Assembly (NCBI RefSeq): GCF_036588685.1
Contig: NC_086379.1
Location: 36,270,001-36,334,000 of the forward strand
Reading direction: 5' to 3'
DNA from: Mytilus trossulus
Lineage: Eukaryota
DNA length: 64,000 bases
The position numbers and the translations under genes are program-made. The notes beneath the pieces are model-generated. The model had not been told where the DNA came from, searched no databases, and saw nothing but the letters and a program-made list of their open reading frames with translations. This document shows, one piece after another, positions 1,065 through 54,200 of the stretch (its first letter is position 1; each line of letters starts with the position of its first letter).

Positions 1065-2259
1065 TTAGTTCCGATGCAAAGACCCTATAAGTGAATCAAT
1101 ATTAACGCCAAAATAAGCAATCTTTAATGACCTGACAACAGTATCGTAACTATATCCCTTCTTGATAAGTCTATTTAAAGGTTTTGTTAGTTTCTGAGGT
1201 GAATGCTGACATGTTTGTGCTTTATAAAGAATATTTCCATTAAAAAAAAGGATGTGAAATACCTGAACGTATAAGAATAGATATAGGAAGATGTGGTGTG
1301 AGTGCCAATGAGACAACTCTCCATCCAAATAACAATTTAAAAATTAAACCATTATAGGTTAAAGTACGGCCTTCAACACGGAGCCTTGGCTCACACCGAA
1401 CAACAAGCTATAAAGGGCCCCAAAATTACTAGTGTAAAACCATTCAAACGGGAAAAAGTCTGCATGTTCAGCTATATTTACGAATGATATCCTTATACCG
1501 ATGATAAAATTTAGTAAAGGTTTGACTAGTTTGTGATATCGAAAACCCTGGTGTAATAATTTTTCAGTAATACATAAATTTATCTCGTTAAAATCTAAAA
1601 CATTGTTACATACACGAACGAATCGTACAAGTTGAGATATATAAACACCGTAAGATGGTGACAATGGAACGTCACCATCTAAAAATGGATAATTAACGAT
1701 AGGAAATGAAAAATCATCTCTTTTATCATAAATTTTAGTATTAAGCTTTCCGTTATTGATATAAATATCAAGATCGAGGAAAGGGCAGTGTTCGTTGTTT
1801 GTGTTAGCTTTATTTAAAGTAAGTTCGACAGGATAAATTTCTTTAGTATGCATACTGAAGTCGTCATTATTGAGAGCCAAAATATCATCCAAATATCTAA
1901 AAGTATTATTAAATTTGTTTATGAGATGTTGTTTCGATGGGTCATTGCTGTATTTTGTCATAAATTGTAACTCATTGCAATACAAAAACAGGTCCGCAAT
2001 AAGTGGTGCACAGTTAGTCCCCATTGGAATTCCGATAACCTGACGATATACGGAATCTCCAAAGCGAACAAAAATGTTATCTAGTAAAAATTCAAGGGCA
2101 TATATAGTTTCAAAGCATGTCCAATTGACATAGTTTTTTGTTTTGTTTATTCCTACCAAAAAAATGACCTAAAAGAGTTTGAACATATATATTCACATTC
2201 TGACTTTTTTACATGCCCATTTAATTAGGTGGGTGATTTTTTTCTTAATGAGAATGTGA
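1065..2259 (-). pseudogene. Penelope-like reverse transcriptase remnant
   Basis: ORF pieces 1359-2159 and 1065-1328 are joined by frameshifts and interrupted by a repeat inserted at about 1278-1455. Confidence 0.85.
1278..1455 (-). mobile_element. Short dispersed repeat (family B variant) inserted into the RT ORF
   Basis: AAGATGTGG..GCCAATGAGACAACTCTCCA..GTACGGCCTTCAAC splits the RT C-terminal coding region. Confidence 0.7.
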
Positions 2260-3245
2260 ATATGTACATATGCTTTTTTCCAGAGACATGCATATACTAT
2301 AATGCATGTATTATAATTATGTCTCTGTTTTTTCTTTAACTTGTTCATTTTTAGAAGAAGTTTACTTTATTTTGATTGCTAACTTCCAGGAAGCAATTCC
2401 CCCGACATATTTTCTATATGCAAAGTGACCTCAATGTGACCCATCTCGTTAAAATCCGGTGATCGCAATACGCATGGATGTCTTTAAAATAAACTAATAT
2501 CTGATTGTACATGTTTAACACGTGCTCAATATATCCATGCCTTTTTGTTGTTTGTTGATAAAAAAAAAAAACCAGTAGAAAAACAGACCAAAACACAAAA
2601 AATGACTATAACCACTGAACCAAAAAAATGCGGTCAAGGTCAGGTGACACCTGCCAGTTGCACATATACTTTACAATCTTCCATAAACAAAAATAACTGG
2701 ACATATTTCTTATGGTATCTGAGATATGGACTTGACCACCCGTTGAAAACTTAGCCTTGTTCACTGATCCATGGAATGAGGTCGAAGTCGAGGTCAAGTA
2801 AACAATATCTGACGAGCATGAGGACCTTGCAAGGTACGCACATACCAAACAGAGTTATCTTACTGCTCATGATAATAGAGAAATTAACATTACAAAATAT
2901 CTTAACTTTTTCTCAAGTAGACTTGTTACCTAACCATGAGAATGAGGTCACGGATACAGCATAGTCAGCTATAAAAGGTCCCGAAATTACAAATGAAAAA
3001 CAATTCAAATGAGGAAACTAACGGCCTGATTTATGTAAAAAAAAAGGGGCAGCCTCCGCGGATCACTATCCCTTTGTCGAGCTTTCTCTAACTAAAGTCG
3101 AAGGCTCGAAAATAACCAGTGGTAAATGAGAGTGATTTTTTTTTTAAATAACAAAAGCATTTACCAAAAAGAAACTCCATTTGAACATGTGCATTACTCA
3201 ATGATTTTAATTTTCAATTTCCAATTGTTCCGTGCTTGATAAAGC

Positions 3246-3278
<33 letters not shown>
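3246..3278. repeat. (TAT)n microsatellite
   Basis: About 11 trinucleotide units. Confidence 0.9.
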
Positions 3279-5280
3279 CGTCAGTTTGCCCAAAAAAATA
3301 CGTTAGTTTTCTCATTTGGATTGTTTCACGTTTGTTATTTCGGGACCTTTTATAGCTGACTATGCTGTATGGACTTTTCTCATTGTTGAAGGCCGTATTG
3401 GGACCCATTGTTGTTACTTTCTGTGTCATTTTATTCTCTTGTGGAGAGTTGTCTCGTTGGCAATCATATGACACCTTCTTTTCTATATTATTGTTAAAAT
3501 ATGACTTTTAAAGATATATGTGATCCTTTTGGTCATGATGTTACAGGACGCATAAAATTGTCAAAGACTAAGAGGTGATTTTAGACAGATAGACGGCCAA
3601 AATACCATATAAACCATTATTGGCGTCTAAAATTAGCTGACATTAGTGTTAAAAATCATCAATATCGGTCTTTTTTATTGTTACAAATCTTGGTGCTAAA
3701 GATGAAAGCTGATGAAAAAAAAACTTATATGTCAGAGAGTCTGAATATAGGATTGACAGAACAGAAACAGAACTGAAAAAAAAGAAATAAAGAATAGCTT
3801 TTAAAAAGGCAAAAAAGGACAGAAAAGCCTAGGAGAATATTGGGGATTTATAAAGATATAAAAGATATAAAAGAATAGAAAGTAATGGGCAAAAATTATT
3901 GAGATAGAGAAAATGGCAAAAAACACAATTAAAGTATACAAAGAGACCCTCATGTCTGAAAATACTGAAATACTTAAAATTGATATCACGTTCGATACCT
4001 TTGTAACTTCTGTAGAAGAAAAGGTTTTAAATAAACATGTTTCAAATTTAAAACAACGTCTGCAAAAAAAAAACCTCTTTGGAATTCCGAGTTGAGTAAG
4101 CTATTTTTCTTTAAGGGTAAATTTGTCTCTGTTGATATATGATTTTTCTACTCTGCATACTTCACTTCTATATAATCCTATCAAATGATTATATTTCAAT
4201 TTTATAATAAAAGTATTATTGAATTTTGGTAAAAAAACCAACTGGTGTACCTTTATCCGTTGTAGTCGTTACAATTTCCTTTTCATTAAAAAAAAAAAAA
4301 AACCCAGTTTTATAAATGCACTAGACTTGAAATGAAATTAGTTTAGCCACTAGTGTTTTAATTCATAATATTCATTTTGGGGATACAAGGGTATACATAT
4401 TTTTTTTCTTGCATGTGTGTAACCAGTGTAACCAATGTAACCATTAGGTTAATGAAGGTTACAAATGAACCAGGATTCGGAATTTCCAAATTTGATGATT
4501 TATGATAGTTTGTATGAGTGTAACCAATGTAACCAGTATGTCAATGGGGTTTACAAAACAAGGTAACTGAATTATGGTGCAACGTGGCATTTTGTGCTTT
4601 ATATGAGAAATATACGTGAACAATATAGGAAAAGGGGACGGCGATGCCGGAGTAATATCACAAAAATACTGAACTCCGAGGACTGAAATTACTAATAATC
4701 CTAACTGAAATGTACATGGAAAAAAACGTTTTTCGTTCGTCATTCGTGATGCCTTGTGCTGTAACACGAATTTTCGTGTAAGTTTGAAATTCGGGTTTTC
4801 GCAATTTTTCTTCTAATCTTAATTAGTACGTTTCATGAAGTTGGTTTATCAGTCTGTAGTAGTGGTCTTTTGATTAACCTTCCGATCAACGGCTACAACG
4901 TTCTGTAACGAGCTTTTTCATTGGCTTCTTCAGTTGCAACAATTTATTTCATTCATTGATTTTAGGTCACTATATCGTCCTAAATTTACTTCACATGTTT
5001 TATTTTTGACAATGACTATCATGTTATACTGATGTTTGATTATTATGATGAAATAAAGGTGTAATTTTGCGAAGAAAATGGAAAAATTCCTTATAAACTT
5101 CGCCCAATACGATTTTGCCTTGCATCATGTTTTGAACAAAATAAACCCAAACGCAAACCCCTGAAAAAATAACATACTGGAAAGAGTTTATTATTTCCAT
5201 TGCATATATTATTGTGAATATAAGTCTTCTATCATATCATATAAACTAGACAATAGAATTTGCCGTGAAGCGAAGACCGA

Positions 5281-44058: not shown

Positions 44059-44703
44059 CAGGTTGGGAACAAACCCCCTGGATGGTGATTATACCTGTAT
44101 AGAGGGATAAACCTTCTTTAGAGGGATAAAATTATCCCTCTGTAGAGGGGTATTTGTGTTTGCACTGGATTTAAAGCAAATAAGGGCAGAATGGCATTTT
44201 CTAATTATATTGGCTATAATCTCTAGCAGTATGTGCATCAACATATGCACTTTACTAAAAATTGGGATAACCTGTTTTCTGCTAAAGTGACAAAACTTGA
44301 AATCTATTGTATACCTATCTGAACACCTGATCAACATCAAAAGGAATAGTTGACCTTTAAAAATCATGTTAAATCTAACAATAGAAATTCTGTTCAGTGA
44401 GGCATAAGTGAGTAGAATTTACCTGATCATCACAGCTTTCAATCATGGTGGACAATAGATTTTATATTTAGTCAGATAAGCAGCAAACTGGGCATGTGCA
44501 TATTAAACTAAGCACATCAATTGGTGCATCAACTGTTGCAGGTTACTGCCATAATAAGTAGAGAATGCCATTCTGCCCTGTTTTGATTTAAATCCAGTCT
44601 AAACAAAAATACCCCTCTATAGAGGGATAATTTTATCCCTCTATAGAAGGTTTATCCCTCTATACAGGTATAATCACCATTGAGAGGGTTTGTTCCCAAC
44701 CTG
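44059..44703. mobile_element. Fold-back MITE with long (over 130 bp) inverted arms
   Basis: TTAAT|CAGGTTGGGAACAAACCC ... GGGTTTGTTCCCAACCTG|TTAAT. An extra right-end copy lies at about 44840-44863. Confidence 0.75.
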
Positions 44704-45200: not shown

Positions 45201-48200
45201 ATGGGAGGACTCTTTTCTTCAAAGGGAAAAGAGAAAAAGGCAGAATCAAGAGTTACAGAACAAGACAAAGCAGTATTGGTAAATCAACTCACACAAAATA
45301 AAAAAAATATAAAGAAGATATGACCTGATGACTGCCAAATATTTTCAATCATTGTCAGTATATTGGTCCAATCAGTATTAACAGAGGGTCGTAATTGGGG
45401 TACCTCATGACGGTAACGGTAAAAATTCTTGCCAAATTACATTATTGGTAAATTTTGGTGTATGACGATAAAACAAACACTTTGTTTTAGATGATAAAAG
45501 CAATGACTGATTTTGACGAATCACATTAATTTTTTTCTCCAAAAATGACGGTAATGATAATTATTAGAGACCTATGACGAATCACAATAAGGATATTTTG
45601 ACGAATCACAGTAAAATTTTAAACAATTAAGACACAGGCACTTATGTTTCTAGCAATATGGGGTTTATTATCCATACACGTACGTAAAATCTTTCGTGCG
45701 GGTATGGATAGTAAACCCCATATTGACAGAAACAAGTAACAAGTGCCTAAATTTCAATATGGGGTTTACTATCCATACCTGTACAAAAAATCTTTTGTAT
45801 GGGTATGGTTAGTAAACCCCATATTGACAGAAACAAGTGCCTGTGAATTTATACAAACTAAAGCAATACAATTGGATACTTTTAGTACATTTAGTAAAAT
45901 AAAATTATACACAGAAGTACATGTAATAGTTTATTTTCATTTTTTTCCAGCAATTAAAGCAACAAAGGGACAAACTAAAGCAATACCAAAAGAAGATCAA
46001 TGTACAGATAGAAAAAGACAGAAATGTGGCTAAACAACTGCTGCATGATGGGAGAAAAGAGTAAGTACGAAATGTGGCTAAACAACTGCTTCATGATTGG
46101 AGAAAAGAGTAAGTACAAGTATCATATTTTTAATAAAATCATTGTACAGGTATTTTAATGTGCTTATCTATACAGCTTCTTTTGCATATTACTATCAGTC
46201 AGGGATACTACTTATACAAGTTATTTTTATTTGTTTAAAGAAGTAAAAAAAAATATATATACATATAAGTAAATAAATAATGTTTGAAAAACCGGGTCCT
46301 ACTAAAATGCGCCCGGGAGCGCCCGGGTGGAGAAAAAGCGCCCGGGGAAAAGAAATAGCGCCCGGGGAAGAAAAAACAGCGCCCGGGGAAAAGAAAAAGC
46401 GCCCGGGGAAAAATAAATAGTTATTGTAATGGTATAAGACAACTTTGTGGCAATAAAATAAGTTATGTAAATTGATTTTTTTTAATTTTAGACAAGTATT
46501 TTGCAAATAAAGATAATAGACATTTGTTATAAAGCACAGACACATCTAAGAATGTTTCAATTTAAACAATAATATATGAATACTATTTGGAAAGACAGAT
46601 AATAATGGATCACAGTTAATGCTGAAGTTTTATAAAATGCAAGACATCAAAAGACATGTTTTTCAAAAACGATTTGAAAATGAAAACTAAAAAAAAAACC
46701 TTAAAATTCACATAAACAAAAATCAGCAAATGAAGCAGTACTATACATGTACCGTATAGGTAAAACAATGGTTTAAAAAGCAGGAGTTTAATTTTAAAAC
46801 TAAGCATTAGAACACTGATAAGCATAGCCATTTAAAGAGATTCAGTTTTAAAATAAAGAAATAATTAATCTATATCAACATCTGCATATAAAACTTTTAC
46901 TATTTTGAAAAAGCACTTAAAGTACAAAAAGTAAATATTAAAACACTGATAAGCAAAGCCATTAAAACAGTTTCAGGTTAAAAAAAAAGATATAATAAAT
47001 CTTTATCAGCGTATGCATATAAAACATTTACTATTGTTAAAAAGCACTAAAAGTACAGCACTATGCGTCTTACCACCTATTCATGCAAACTGTAAATTAC
47101 ATTACTGTACAAAACAAATATAAAACAATGCACATTAAAAGTTATGTTGAAAATTTCAAGGTAGTGGTCTTGTTGCTTCGAATACGCTTCTTTTGGTTTG
47201 GCTTCCTTGCGGTGGTTGGAGTTTTGGGAATCTTTAATTTTCCATCGGATGATTCCACAAAATTGTCTCTTGGTTTGCTTAAATTCATTAACTTTCTGAA
47301 AATGGCGTCCTTTTCTTTTGCACATTTCGACGACCATACCACATCTGTTACTTGAAGTTTTCTAGCCCAAGGAGCCAACGCATAGTTCCCCTGGCCATGT
47401 AATGCTCGGCGTATATCTCGATACTGTAATTGAACAATTTTGTGTAGTTTGCCTATAAGGTCCGGGAGCTTTACGGCTTTCCAATTTGTAGAAAGTTTTA
47501 AAATATTGTTCATGGATTCGCATGAATTGTTCTTCCAGTTAATTGGGGCAATGTCTTTTTGTGCCGGTTCCCAAACATAGTTCTTGAGAGATGATGTACT
47601 ACAGCTAAAGTAACGTTGAAACGCGGGAACACTGTACTCGTACTTCGCTTCCAACTCCATTACCTTTAGGTCAAACTCAACATCATCAGGAGAAGAGAGG
47701 AGACCATCTACACCAAACACATCGTGGAGCACAGTGTTGTAGTTTGGGTCTTTTTCGCCAATGACTTCCCGCAAATGTCTCTTAAAATTTTCCTCAATGT
47801 GACGTGTGCAAAGAATTTGCTGGGAATCTGGAAAGCACTTCTGTATAGCTTTCGTCAAAGCCTTTTCCTCGTCCGAGCCAAATACAAGGCTTTTGCCACT
47901 AATCTGTGCTCCAGGAATATCGTCCAAAAAGCACTGGAGGTGGCTAAAAAATCGATGGTAAGTGTGGAAGCAACCGTCCCAGTGGAGGTAGCATGGCCCA
48001 AGCATGATTGGTGCTGGAGTGTTAGAAACCTTTCTTATTAAGTTCTGGTTGTGAAAAACTGTAACAGTAACATATGCAGCCCCCAAATTAAAAGTGCGGT
48101 CAACCCCAATGATATGTTTAGATTCGGACGAGCAGAATTTCTTGAGATCGAGAAGTTGTTCATCAGTATACACTACTACTGAAGGGGGTTTGCCGGAGAG

Positions 48201-51200
48201 TTGAACAATTTCTTTAATAAACGGATGACCATGTTGCATACTCATTAATGTTTGTATGTCGTCGGCATTATTAGATGCCTTCTGTTGATGTGGACGATCC
48301 CTTTTCTTCTCGTTGTACTTAAAATTTTGTATCTGTTTCAAGTCTCTTGGGGCTTCCATAGAGTCATCTAACGCTAGATCGGTATAAATTTCCCTGCAAT
48401 TCTGTGTTTTTACCATTCCCTTGATGTCATCAACAATTTGTGCATTTGTTCGGATGTAATCGCCATGTCCATTTTTATTATTTCCATGCAGACTTTTTGT
48501 TGTTGGGAAAATACCAATGTATTCCACGAACGCTACCCCATTGCCGCTTGCTGGGCTCTCGGGACTAGTAACAACCCATGATATTCTCCTTTGATATTCC
48601 GGCAAGCGCTGTAGTTTTGTGTATGCTCGCTTCAACACTAACACTTCTGTTGGATTTGGTTGTGGTTCTAGCGGAACTCTTGCACCCTTTGCTGTTTTTA
48701 CGAAAAGGCCGTTTTGGAGATCAATATACTGCAAACGCCCATTTTGGTACACAAATCTGTGGGTCTTCAAAGAAACACGACCCCAGGCACCACAATCATC
48801 TACATATTGTCTACTTTTCCCTTGTTTTTCCCTCTGTTCGTTATTTGTATTGTCAACCATATATCCAATGTTGTTTTTAATTCCACGTGGAATATGCATC
48901 TCCTTGTTTTTAGCATCATTTGATAAGACAAGCACGAGTTCGTCAGTGCTTAAAAATTTGCCATTGTTTCCCCTTCCATTCGGAACTTTAATGCTTGATT
49001 GTTCAGTATTGTCTAAATCGGATATTTCAGAAAACTCATCGCTCGTGTTTTCTGCCATATAATCATCATGCATATATGTACCTGCTCTTATAGGCGACGA
49101 TGTTTTCATAGTGATTGAGTGTTCCATGATCTCAGTGTTATCAAGATCTATAGTAGTTTGGTAAGTTTGGTACATAGAAGGTTTTCTTATCAAAGGCACA
49201 AAGTGATTCGCCGACCATGTGATAGTGTGATCAGGGGGTGAACAACTTGTCCACATAACAGTAAAGGTTCTATCTGTTTCATTTGATGGTAAGCATGTGG
49301 TATTCAGAGTAATGAACGCAAGATCACCAGTGCCGTTAACTGGAGGATACACAACCCTTATATTGTTTCCAGTGATATTGCTCAATGCGTGAATTGTCCA
49401 TTGTGAAGAATAACCGCCGGGTTTTGAACAGTCAATACATGACTTATTGTAACTTGGGGAGACTAGGAGAATGTTTGTATAATTATCAATCTTAGAATAC
49501 GCTTCACTGTTTAATGACATTTCAATGCAAGTACGGACACGGAGTTCGGTCACAAGACTGTTGTCACCCACGAGGGCCATAGAAGCAGAACTGAACAGAC
49601 AACTCCCATCTGTTAAAGACGCCAATGGGACACCTGAAACCAAAATAATATAGTTTAATAGATCGTTCCAATGTTGTGCTGTCCCAGGTCAGGGGAGGGT
49701 TTGGATCATTTACTTTTTACATAAATTAGCCCATATTTTTCTTGTTTGAATTGTTTTACATTTTTATTTTGGGGACCTTTTATACAGCTGACTATGCTTA
49801 AGTTTGCTCATTATTGAAACCCGTATGGTGACCTATAGTTATAGTTGTGAATTTCTGTGTCATTTGGTCTCTTGTGAAAAGTGGGTTCATTGGCAATCAC
49901 ACAAAATCTTCTTTATATTTTGGACATATAGTGTAAAGAAATTCCACTTATTTACGTATATACATACCCAGTATAATTCAAAGCCTCGAGATAGACTAAA
50001 AGTTTAGAATGCATGTGACTTCACTATTGTCCAGTTATTTTGCTGTCTTTTATTATATGACAAACGAGACAGTGAATTCAAATGCTTCATATGAACCAGA
50101 TATAACTTTTTTTTTTGTATTATATATTTTAAAGCTTAATGTTATTATAAATATATATTTCCGGTATTTTCTTTATGCCATCAAAAATCTCTCACCATTC
50201 TCGTTCATCTTGTATTGTTTCAACAGCAGTTTGGAAGTAGAATGTTCCGAGTGTACCGCCAACTTCTCTTCGTTGTTCTCATCTTGAGTCATTGTGGGAA
50301 GCAATCCCTTTTCTCTTTTACAGCAAAATCGTAGGTAATTTAATCCCTGTTCACCAGCCTAAAAGTAATCAATTACATAGTCATATAACAAAAGACTCTG
50401 CAGGTTCATATATAGATTCTTATATATGAGATACACACAAATGGTTTTGAATATTAACGATTGTGGTTAATTGGATTACCGTAATCAGCGTGTCGTGTGT
50501 ACAGTTAACGATTGTTAATTAGTCTTATCTTCTTTCATTACAATTGGATTACCGTAATCAGCGCGTCGTGTTTACAGTTTACGATTGTTAATTAGTCTTA
50601 GCTTATTATATTTATAAATATACATTTCATTTATTACTTTAAACATACATATAATTTTTAAAAATGAAAACGGGGGAGAATAATGAAAATTAAAATTCCA
50701 TAAGCGTACATTTTGACTGAACAAGAAGTTTTATTATTTTCTCTCTTATTATTTATATAATATATTACAAATCTCACCTCTGTCAATCTTAATAATGCTG
50801 AGGTGTATGTGTATTCGTCTGATTGTTCATGGGAAAAACACCCTTTGCACGAATAATTCACATTTTCTTCTGTCAGGAACATTTCATAGTCTGCCAATTC
50901 CAACTCTTCACATCGTAGATGGTACCACGTATCACAATTGTCACAGCAGATGCTAGCAATTTTACAGTTTTTACGGCATATCCCACAGTTCCGGAATATC
51001 ATATTAGCTTTAGCTTTTGCAGTAGGTTTAACTTTTCTTTTCTTAGTGGCAGGCATATTGAAACCCTTCCTCAATCTTCAACCGTCAATTCAAGTATGTT
51101 TTGTAAAATACAAAACTTTGAAAAGTGTTCACCATGCAGTTGCGAATATTAGACCTCAGGCAACGCTTATTTTTAAATAACGAAGTATACGTTTTGATCG

Positions 51201-54200
51201 AAGACAATATAGTTCATGATTTTTCTATAAACTCTTGTTTATATTTACTAACTATAAGTAAACTATATAAAATTTTGAAATCTTAAATGTAAAAATGCAA
51301 CAACACCATCTACACACTTTAGATTTAGCATCGTGCATTTTCCCATTTATATTAAGGACATAACAAGCAAAATTTCCTTTTTTATTCAAGAAAACATTAA
51401 TGTTGTAAAATTTTATTTATTTTATTCTCCCCGGGCGCTATTTTTTCTTTCCCGGGCGCTTTTTCTTTTCTCCGGGCGCTTTTTCTTTTCCCGGGCGCTC
51501 CCGGGCGCTTTTTAGTAGGACCGGAAAAACCTTCCCTTAATTTTCTCAAAAATTTACTTGTATAACATGTATAAGTAAATTTTTCTTACAATCCCACAAA
51601 AGTCCTCAAGTTTTGAGATGTTAATTTATGCTGTTAATAATTTTTCCCAGGTTTGCTCAATTTTTTTTATGAGAACTCAATGTTTCATCTCATTTATTCA
51701 ACAAAGAAACTGATTGTGCAAAGATCTTAAGTATTTTTGCAAGGCATTCAAAAATTGCTCCTTGGGGGGGGGGTTGTAAATGAGCAGTGTTCTGAAGATA
51801 ACAAACAAATGGTACATTGTATTTTCATTGTCCATGAAATTACACTTAAATGATAAGTAAAGACATCTGCAAAGGGCAGTTATCTATAATTTAAAATTCT
51901 ATTAGAGCAAAGAAATCATAAGAATTCAATAAAAGAAAATAAGATGACTTGGTTACTTCTACAAGTAAAAAAATCTGAATTTCTAAGGGACATAACTCAG
52001 CCAATATTTTTTGTTTACCTATACATGTAGATACAAGTTAATAAAATTCACTTGTATAAGTATCCAACAACAAATTTACTTATATAAGTATATTAATATT
52101 ACTTCTTCCAGTAATTAAACATAACTTGTACAAGTAGTACCCATGACTGACTATTCTGTTCAAAAAATCTGTAGTACTGGAAATCTACTATTTTGTTACT
52201 TAAGAATTGTTGTAATATTTAGGTACCTGTATTTTACAGTACTTGATTTGTACTAGAAATTTAAGTACTACAGATTTTTGGAGTTTGTCGTTTTCAAATC
52301 TCATAAAGTTATGATGTTTAAACATGGAATACTGTGATCATTGTTGGTATTGTTTTTGTACCAATATTTTAAGTACAAATCAAGTACTGGAATATACAAG
52401 TACCTAAAAATTACAATAATTCTAAAGTAAAGAAATAGTACTAAATATTAAAAGTAAATTTCCAGTACTACAGATTTTAAGTACAGAAAAAGTACCTATG
52501 CTAAAGTAGCTTTGTTACTATAGGAGATTTTGACTTATGAAAATACCATTTGGACAAGTCTTTTACAACTTACAATTACATCATTTTCTCTCATCTTTTT
52601 AGCCCATTCAGGGGCGGATCCAGAACCTTGATGTCTGGGGGGGGCACCATGAAACCAAAATTTTAGATTTTTTAGAGATGTATATACGGTATATGCGTGT
52701 GAGTGTTTTGTTTTTAGGTTGTTATTTTTTTTAGAAGGATCAGATCAGATCATCGTTTCTATATCTTTATATTTCTAGATCTTTTATTGTTTTTATTTAT
52801 TTCACTTTATACTTTCTTTCTGTCAATAGATCTTTATCATATTTGTCCTCAACATGCATCAAAGATTTGCCACTGGACGTCAAACAACATACAATCAATC
52901 AATATTTTCTACCATCACTTCTATATTTGTTTGACCTTGCTTCCAGACTTACTTTTTTGGTAAAATATTCTAATTTCTGTAAAACATCTTCATATCCTTA
53001 CAAATGGTGACCTTTTTTTAGCCTCGTACATGTACATGGCAATTGAAACAAGAAAAATAAACAAATATAACTAAATGCTCCACCATTAAAAAAAATGATT
53101 AAGTCCCAGATTCAGTTACAAAAGAAAATGTCAACTCATCATGTTTTCCTAGGCCGGTGGAAAAGGGGGGGGGGGGGGGGCAATTGTCGATTTCCCATGT
53201 AAAATAAGAGGGAGGGAAATAGGACATTCCATTTATAAATCAAACGTGTATGGTATTTTAAAATAATAAATGATTTGATTTATTGCTGAATAAATTCACA
53301 AAAAGACGGTTTTGAAGAGAGAAAAAACATAAATTCTAAATAAAATGGTATTGTGAGTACTGTATTTTGAACTGAAGAGAAACTAAGTACTATTAAAATA
53401 TAGATGTATACCAACATTAAACATATAATTTGTAGTGCAAAGCTCTCATTCCTTTCACGGATTTGGCTATACTTTTTGGACCTTTTGGATTATTGCTCCT
53501 CATCTTTTATATAAGCTTTGGGTTTTTAATATTTTGGCCACGAGCATCACTGAAGAGACATGTATTGTCGAAATGCGCATCTGGTGCAAGAAAATTGGTA
53601 CCGTTTATTTATTACTACCACTGGGTCGATGCCTCTGCTGGTGGACTATTAGTCCCCGAGGGTATCACCAGCCCAGTAGCCAGTACTTCGGTACTGGCAT
53701 GAAAATACGGATTTTTGTGTTATTAAAATTTGCTGTTACAAATATTAGAAATTATTATAAATTAAGGAATGTATCTCCCTCGTGCAAAGCTCTCATTCCT
53801 TTCACGGATTTGGCTATACTTTTTGGACCTTTTGGATTATTGCTCCTCATCTTTTATATAAGCTTTGGGTTTTTAATATTTTGGCCACGAGCATCACTGA
53901 AGAGACATGTATTGTCGAAATGCGCATCTGGTGCAAGAAAATTGGTACCGTTTATTTATTACTACCACTGGGTCGATGCCTCTGCTGGTGGACTATTAGT
54001 CCCTGAGGGTATCACCAGCCCAGTAGCCAGTACTTCGGTACTGGCATGAAAATACGGATTTTTGTGTTATTAAAATTTGCTATTACAAATATTAGAAATT
54101 ATTATAAATTAAGGAATGTATCTCCCTCGTGCAAAGCTCTCATTCCTTTCACGGATTTGGCTATACTTTTTGGACCTTTTAGATTATTGCTCCTCATCTT

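Follow-up and report, generated by a model that had tools for sequence, protein, structure and literature searches.

A probable autonomous Mutator transposon of Mytilus trossulus with a predicted PHD-OTU-DDE transposase

The subject of this report is a mobile element of Mytilus trossulus, located in a window of 64,000 nucleotides (assembly GCF_036588685.1, contig NC_086379.1, positions 36,270,001 to 36,334,000 of the forward strand); the window is the whole stretch of DNA that was analysed, and coordinates are given within it. Positions 46294-51523, on the minus strand, constitute a 5,230-bp DNA transposon of the Mutator superfamily, and the ends of its genomic copies coincide with both positions. 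We consider it highly likely that this is an autonomous, recently mobile cut-and-paste transposon, a Mutator-like element (MULE), whose three-exon gene encodes a 977-aa transposase; in this protein a PHD finger, an OTU protease domain, a beta-rich domain with a helix-turn-helix (HTH)-like segment and a DDE catalytic core follow one another in a single chain, and the roles of these parts are those that we infer.

The limits of the element can be placed at 46294 and 51523 because its termini are flanked directly by a perfect 8-bp duplication. The ends and their repeats are as follows:

46294-51523, minus strand: the whole Mutator-like element, with the termini GGGTCCTAC...GTAGGACCG
46286-46293, no strand assigned: left target-site duplication of 8 bp, GAAAAACC, read directly
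51524-51531, no strand assigned: right target-site duplication, GAAAAACC, a perfect match to the left copy
46295-46397, no strand assigned: terminal inverted repeat on the 3' side of the gene, with an array of GCGCCCGGGG-A-rich sub-repeats of ~20 bp at 46318-46417
51420-51522, no strand assigned: terminal inverted repeat on the 5' side of the gene, which shares its 20-bp sub-repeats with the other arm
46806-47057, no strand assigned: subterminal tandem repeat, 1.9 copies of a 131-bp unit, located past the stop codon and before the inverted repeat, from a tandem-repeat scan and self-matches among copies

The two arms of the terminal inverted repeat, each of ~103 nt, are 90% complementary, and each is composed of 4-5 tandem copies of the GCGCCCGGGG-A-rich unit with a period of ~20 bp. 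Long inverted repeats and a duplication inside the range of ~8-11 bp are Mutator traits, and both are present here. Target-site duplications of 8 bp were found in three of the four copies inspected (GAAAAACC here, ATAATTCG on C10 and AAAATTAT on C9), and the copy number of the subterminal 131-bp repeat differs between genomic copies.

The present copy is the only full-length one in the 1.3-Gb assembly. The copy on C10, with its own duplication, is 98.5-99% identical and lacks element positions 2150-4127, a 2-kb internal deletion that takes away the OTU domain and exon 2; identity is 85-96% in older deleted copies and 76-85% in short derivatives, of which at least 35, with both ends retained, are spread over the chromosomes and include the copy on C9. 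The 99%-identical deleted copy, together with the dozens of short derivatives, points to recent activity. Values of pN/pS for the present copy were 0.23 against C10 and 0.05 against C6, most other comparisons gave 0.22-0.36, and one 317-nt segment gave 0.77. The differences between copies are thus mainly synonymous, which suggests that they arose largely in lineages selected for a working protein. Sister families are also present in the same mussel genome, with OTU domains 40-47% identical to that of the element inside open frames of 841-898 aa (loci include C2:78198104-78198559, C7:10180596-10181033 and C9:54683737-54684207), and these may be further autonomous OTU-bearing elements.

The initial annotation had proposed that two open reading frames (ORFs) on the minus strand, one containing the PHD finger (50658-51074) and one of 833 aa (47142-49643), are parts of one gene, whose 977-aa product runs from PHD through a linker and OTU to MULE DDE, and are joined in frame by a 163-nt exon at 50358-50196. 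The ORF list and Pfam agree on the two frames and their places, and the splice sites, phase, frame and profile of the relatives bear out the predicted joining exon. Three GT-AG exons of 279, 163 and 2492 nt, 2934 nt together, yield 977 codons and a TAA stop:

50778-51056, minus strand: exon 1, 279 nt, with the ATG at 51056-51054 and the donor GAG/GTGAGA
50359-50777, minus strand: intron 1 (GT...AG), which holds a 73-bp tandem duplication at 50469-50604 with a 93% match
50196-50358, minus strand: exon 2, 163 nt, the linker from PHD to OTU, with the acceptor TTTTAG/G and the donor ATG/GTGAGA
49634-50195, minus strand: intron 2 (GT...AG), with canonical sites
47142-49633, minus strand: exon 3, which encodes the OTU domain, the beta domain, the HTH-like segment and the DDE core, with the acceptor TTTCAG/G, the stop TAA at 47142-47144 and homologs at E values down to 0

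All four splice sites are canonical, the phases are 0, 1 and 2, and the split codon G/GT encodes Gly. When exon 1 is spliced straight to exon 3, a stop follows after 6 codons, and exon 2 is therefore required. Homology searches were run exon by exon, and structure models cover the OTU part and the last 611 residues. A hidden Markov model (HMM) built from the N-termini of seven relatives and searched against six-frame pieces of 49400-51400 matched exon 1 at E 1.8e-19, with the alignment ending exactly at the donor; its next-best match, colinear with the first, was exon 2 (profile positions 82-127), again ending at the donor. An open frame of 833 codons at 30-40% GC is far beyond chance, and the same domain order was found in the relatives P0002, P0003, P0005 and P0007.

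The last exon carries the transposase proper, which ends in a basic tail after the DDE core. Its parts can be located as follows:

48498-48905, minus strand: beta-rich middle domain, IPxGxK...DDCGxW...PQP...EYxGxF...HGNxK...YxRT, from invariant columns and model strands E37-E154
48237-48455, minus strand: helical HTH-like segment that links the beta domain to the catalytic core, model helices 179-247
47373-48230, minus strand: DDE (RNase H-like) core with an all-alpha insertion, from conserved motifs and a structural match
48099-48101, 47871-47873, 47799-47810 and 47517-47519, minus strand: the DDE residues D659, D735, C756-x2-H759 and E853, in this order, with codons checked

The motifs GVDRTF, GSDEEK, LCTRH and NSCESMN, conserved in the family, supply D659, D735, the CxxH and E853. 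The spacings within the triad are 75 and 117, and the CxxH follows the second Asp; in the model of the last 611 residues, with a pLDDT of 87, these residues occupy the strands and the helix where they are expected. The best structural match of the transposase was ISCth4 of the IS256 family (Foldseek E 2.3e-7; VIA Z 12.2 over 226 residues, rmsd (root-mean-square deviation) 5.0), ranking above Hermes, the P element, RAG1 and retroviral integrases. Bacterial IS256 and eukaryotic Mutator are relatives of each other. Sequence profiles scored weakly on the present copy (Transposase_mut 13.5 bits; NCBIfam IS256 20.7 bits, cut-off 150), and several relatives exceed the profile cut-offs, P0004 with Transposase_mut (23.5 > 21) and P0031, P0050 and P0064 with MULE (31.1, 43 and 30.2). 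Upstream of the core, the beta-rich domain gave VIA matches to SSR4 (Z 8.0), a DNA-bound GCM domain (Z 6.3), WOPR (Z 6.2) and NAC (Z 6.0); these matches are weak and such Z values may mean only a common arrangement, so the assignment of its fold is tentative. It is probably a DNA-binding domain, as judged from the model, and MULE transposases have been reported with a DNA-binding domain of WRKY-GCM1 type (PMC1702500). Similarly, the helical segment, with VIA matches to the DNA-binding HTH of SETMAR (Z 6.7) and the HTH of a small terminase (Z 6.2), is tentatively assigned as HTH-like.

Two further domains precede the transposase:

49185-49633, minus strand: OTU protease domain, residues ~148-297 of the 977-aa model, from Pfam, the model and Foldseek
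49608-49610, 49599-49601 and 49203-49205, minus strand: the OTU residues Asp156, Cys159 (TGT) and His291 (CAC), in this order, with codons checked
50838-50987, minus strand: PHD finger of C4HC3 type, from Pfam and the ligand pattern

The OTU domain scored 26.1 bits in Pfam (cut-off 23.3), and in an AlphaFold model with a pLDDT of 93 the Cys opens helix 12-22 and the His opens strand 144-149. All top Foldseek matches in the PDB were OTU deubiquitinases (E 1e-6 to 1e-3, TM 0.5-0.6), including OTUD1, OTUD3, OTUD5/DUBA, VCPIP1, Cezanne, A20 and nairovirus OTUs. The subfamily profile aligns the DGnCLF motif of the Cys to PDGNCLY of OTUD1, GDGHCLV of VCPIP1 and GDGNCLL of OTUD7B, and the nHFVP motif of the His to NHYIP of VCPIP1 and AHFSAL of OTUD7B; of the 67 sequences in the subfamily alignment, 62 retain the Cys of D-G-x-C-L-F and 60 the His of N-H-F-V-P. 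An intact Cys and His had been read from the letters in the initial annotation, and the codons lie exactly where it had placed them, within an OTU fold that aligns to solved OTU structures. With this fold and the conserved Cys and His, the protease is apparently active. An exhaustive HMMER search with a 172-aa OTU query retrieved 1,008 cluster representatives at E <= 1e-3, 307 of them at E <= 1e-10, and an ESM Atlas look-up returned generic OTU clusters only. The PHD finger in the exon 1 ORF scored 25.6 bits in Pfam (cut-off 24), its ligands are spaced C-x2-C-x9-C-x2-C-x4-H-x2-C-x20-C-x2-C, and the Trp of the WYH motif is kept in the present copy. Its PDB sequence matches were all PHD fingers, and the nearest solved ones were PHF12, Pygopus 2, KDM7 and MLL1 PHD3.

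The exon 3 protein has strong relatives, with E values from 0 to 1e-36. In four of them, P0002, P0003, P0005 and P0007, a PHD finger, a linker of ~80 aa, an OTU domain, the conserved middle domain and MULE stand in a single chain, and this spacing of ~80 aa between PHD and OTU is that of the three-exon model. P0007 is an NCBI XP protein of 987 aa from the tunicate Styela clava; the other three, P0002, P0003 and P0005, measure 1,043-1,184 aa, were called as genes from short ENA/Logan contigs and are apparently unspliced ORFs. Among 34 aligned relatives, profile matches were obtained for OTU in 21, for MULE in 19 and for PHD in nine. Named hosts of relatives include Styela, Ciona, Pomacea, Antedon, Anneissia, Pinctada, Saccostrea, Mya, Tubulanus and Palaemon. 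As the same architecture occurs in several animals, it marks a lineage of animal Mutator elements rather than a local accident, and on sequence comparison PHD-OTU-Mutator is a conserved and widespread architecture in molluscs, echinoderms and tunicates, whose members stand in the databases as uncharacterised proteins. The OTU subfamily was also found on a Helitron Rep/helicase protein (P0192), a tyrosine-recombinase (Phage_integrase) protein (P0137) and a FLYWCH-MULE protein (P0050), and by this distribution it behaves as a module exchanged among transposon classes.

Several side observations concern the same family. A long linker between the OTU and beta domains is seen in all relatives and is poorly conserved. 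The Pfam label PF27108.1 is precomputed on P0005, P0007, P0080, P0183 and P0195, and it may describe the linker region between PHD and OTU, as it is the sole label of P0195, a 172-aa protein that runs from the PHD through the linker into the beginning of the OTU. P0153, a protein of Mya arenaria with the UniRef name endonuclease/exonuclease/phosphatase domain-containing, has an OTU of the same subfamily. P0019 (Mytilus edulis CAG2190305.1, 'NIDO domain-containing') contains a 93-aa stretch 94% identical to the OTU of the element and is probably a gene model that absorbed a fragment of the present transposon family. Finally, P0115 and P0139, of ~640 aa, combine a vertnin-like OTU and the beta middle domain with acidic tails and are without DDE; their OTU domains are 47% identical to each other, the catalytic Cys is replaced by Ser and Ala, respectively, and P0115 is also without the His. 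By sequence, they resemble non-catalytic or domesticated descendants of the present transposon protein, parallel to vertnin.

We propose that the DDE core and the DNA-binding region would recognise the inverted repeats with their many sub-repeats, excise and integrate the element, and thereby make the 8-bp duplications. By analogy, the OTU domain would most likely be a protease of deubiquitinase type, or one directed at a ubiquitin-like modifier, that acts in cis for the element and protects or activates the transposition machinery; for example, it may prevent the ubiquitin-dependent removal of the transposase or of cofactors of transposition, a role that has been proposed for the deubiquitinases borne by Helitrons. 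The PHD finger would most likely tether the protein to histone H3 tails. A number of points weigh against this interpretation. The Pfam MULE profile gives 25.8 bits in the present copy, slightly under the gathering cut-off of 27.6. Both splice junctions are predictions from sequence and homology, and exon 2 has modest homology support, at E 1.3e-3 within a small search space. An Arg lies two residues before the first Cys of the PHD finger, where most relatives have Tyr, and this change means that the reading of histone marks may differ or be weak. There is no Asp or Asn two residues past the catalytic His of the OTU domain, so that the third member of the triad is atypical; and the protease activity, its substrate and the ligand of the PHD finger are what we infer from the domains.

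A more specific proposal makes PHD-OTU a chromatin-directed deubiquitinase, which docks on H3, strips ubiquitin and so serves targeting or anti-silencing, and at the same time makes it the ancestor of the inactive OTU of vertebrate vertnin; we regard this combination as unlikely. If it were true, the PHD finger would dock on a particular state of H3 and the OTU domain would strip repressive or degradative ubiquitin from histones or from the transposase, giving the element a targeting or anti-silencing activity of its own. The initial annotation had suggested along these lines that the element may sense the state of H3K4 and take off ubiquitin, for example from H2Aub or from its own degradation tag. 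For a pocket that would bind H3K4me0 or H3K4me3, formed by an aromatic cage or by acidic N-terminal residues, the kept Trp and the intact ligands of the PHD finger stand beside the Arg mentioned above. As for vertnin, it is one of two inactive human OTU homologs without a catalytic site (PMC10318531), the published alignment has Leu at the position of the catalytic Cys (PMC3024977 supplement), and one motif of the protein resembles the HTH domain of the IS3/IS911 transposase (PMC3024977). Compared by eye with the published alignment, GEGSLLFEAASMLLWGD..LELRARTVVEM of vertnin corresponds to DGSCLFSSASMALVGD..ELRVRTCIEM of the element, NVWHLYALASVL.RNIYSIYP (WHLYALASVL.RNIYSIYP) to WTIHALSNITGNNIRVVYP, and LHIMWAG to FTVMWTS. 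Two strong relatives of the OTU, moreover, have been named after vertnin by independent pipelines, P0043 (E 2.8e-27; 'vertnin-like' in NCBI) and P0080 (E 6.3e-24; a PHD-OTU fragment of a pearl oyster, 'Vertnin' in UniRef). The resemblance that the initial annotation had noted is therefore real at the level of motifs, and the loss of the Cys in vertnin, which it had also mentioned, is published. Vertebrate vertnin itself was not among the matches of word-indexed searches with the OTU region and with a 91-sequence profile, and it was not retrieved from the best 150 of the 1,008 exhaustive OTU matches. The broader suggestion that a transposon-borne OTU was the source of vertnin is, from these motifs, a plausible hypothesis. 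The element differs from vertnin in that it keeps Cys159 and His291, carries a Mutator DDE and is multi-copy and mobile, whereas vertnin has lost the Cys, has an IS3/IS911-like HTH and is a single-copy host gene. An assignment of the gene as a vertnin ortholog was rejected on the intact Cys159/His291, the Mutator DDE downstream and the mobile multi-copy locus.

In another account, the OTU domain is a self-processing protease that cuts the 977-aa precursor, for example in the acidic linker past the OTU, into PHD-OTU and transposase, much as polyproteins are processed by OTU and papain-like proteases of viruses. The long and variable linker between the OTU and beta domains in all relatives and the atypical third triad residue would suit such a role, and viral deubiquitinases often double as polyprotein proteases (PMC9741609). 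However, no conserved Gly-Gly-like cleavage motif was seen, none having been searched for, and the nearest structural matches are cellular deubiquitinases. In addition, the same OTU subfamily occurs on a Helitron and a tyrosine recombinase with different neighbouring sequence, and its presence on unrelated transposon types fits a trans-acting activity better than self-processing. We rate self-processing as improbable and prefer a deubiquitinase-type role in aid of transposition.

Separate units, namely a PHD mini-gene or captured fragment in the PHD exon(s) and an OTU-transposase that starts in exon 3, would agree with the ORF track, on which the frames lie apart, with the predicted proteins P0004 and P0009, which are without PHD, and with junctions known from sequence prediction. 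Yet the frame of exon 3 has no ATG ahead of the OTU, the phase of its acceptor fits exon 2, the skipping of exon 2 leads to a stop, the four single-chain relatives share the ~80-aa spacing, and the profile alignments to exons 1 and 2 extend as far as the donors, all of which makes this arrangement very improbable; two unrelated ORFs were rejected on frame, phase, single-chain relatives and profile matches. A domesticated host gene or a dead, immobile relic with a non-catalytic vertnin-like OTU is scarcely credible, despite the sole full-length copy in the assembly and the existence of the dead-OTU relatives P0115 and P0139 without DDE, in view of the intact inverted repeats and perfect duplication, the 99%-identical deleted copy and derivatives that share the ends, the intact Cys, His, DDE triad and CxxH, and, on weak evidence, a locus apparently antisense within a Snf7-family gene; the host-gene candidate was rejected on its mobile-element ends, its copies and its intact catalytic residues.

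Comparison with known systems places the element among Mutator transposons and also sets it apart from those described. With MULEs/MuDR and with IS256 (ISCth4, the best structural match) it shares the DDE core, the CxxH past the second Asp, an N-terminal DNA-binding domain of beta type, long inverted repeats and the 8-bp duplication; it differs from described MULEs in the N-terminal PHD finger and OTU protease. The domain tables of two MULE surveys contain no protease, and OTU goes unmentioned in both (PMC6446971, PMC13359780); an OTU-bearing Mutator was not described in the literature searched for Mutator/MuDR together with OTU, and the curators of Repbase and Dfam may already have consensus entries for the lineage. 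Plants, hydra and lancelet have Mutator elements with a Ulp1 (C48) protease (PMC2836005). Such elements likewise have a cysteine protease for a ubiquitin-like modifier as an accessory domain, but this is Ulp1, whereas the present element carries OTU, fused N-terminally together with PHD. OTU domains have been described at the C-terminus of Ginger1 transposases and in animal Helitrons, and Ginger1-9_HM combines a Ulp1 protease with PHD (PMC2836005). A transposon-borne OTU is thus common to the element, Ginger1 and animal Helitrons/Helentrons, and the OTU of the Helitron protein P0192 belongs to the same subfamily; the mobility enzyme, in contrast, is a Gypsy-type integrase with a C-terminal OTU or Ulp1 in Ginger1, Rep/helicase in Helitrons, and a Mutator/IS256-type DDE with an N-terminal OTU here. 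A Ginger1 element, with its YPYY, H2C2 and GPY/F integrase and C-terminal OTU/Ulp1, was rejected on the IS256/Mutator-type transposase and the N-terminal OTU. Rehavkus, now in MuDR, has a PHD finger, a minisatellite beside one inverted repeat and 9-bp duplications (PMC6446971; PMC4455052). Compared by description, the two are alike in that the Mutator-related transposase has a PHD finger, the inverted repeats are long and a tandem repeat lies inside one end (131 bp x1.9 here), and they differ in that Rehavkus makes a 9-bp duplication and has no protease described, while the present element makes one of 8 bp and carries OTU.

The surroundings of the element show further features. A Snf7-family exon match lies in the window at 45948-46091 on the plus strand, ~200 bp beyond the left end of the element; it is weak (26.3 bits, E 0.004) and has one in-frame TAA, and it is consistent, as weak evidence, with insertion in antisense orientation in an intron of a CHMP6-like (Snf7-family) gene. 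Hairpin-like inverted repeats flank the element at 44059-44703 (257-nt arms, 80%) and at 45645-45835 and 52186-52440 (82-83-nt arms, 84%), and these may be insertions of the MITE (miniature inverted-repeat transposable element) type.

Ulp1, OTU and VTD proteases have all been described on transposons, and the part of these enzymes in transposition is unsettled; the VTD deubiquitinases of Helitrons are active on K48 and K63 chains, and transposon OTUs had never been assayed as of 2022 (PMC9741609). The locus described here is young and intact, has a single gene and is bounded by defined ends, so that point mutants assayed for transposition can show what PHD and OTU each contribute. In addition, the orphan dead OTU of vertnin, a developmental regulator of vertebrates, would be tied to an OTU subfamily borne by transposons, and through this tie a transposon origin of vertnin becomes testable by phylogeny.

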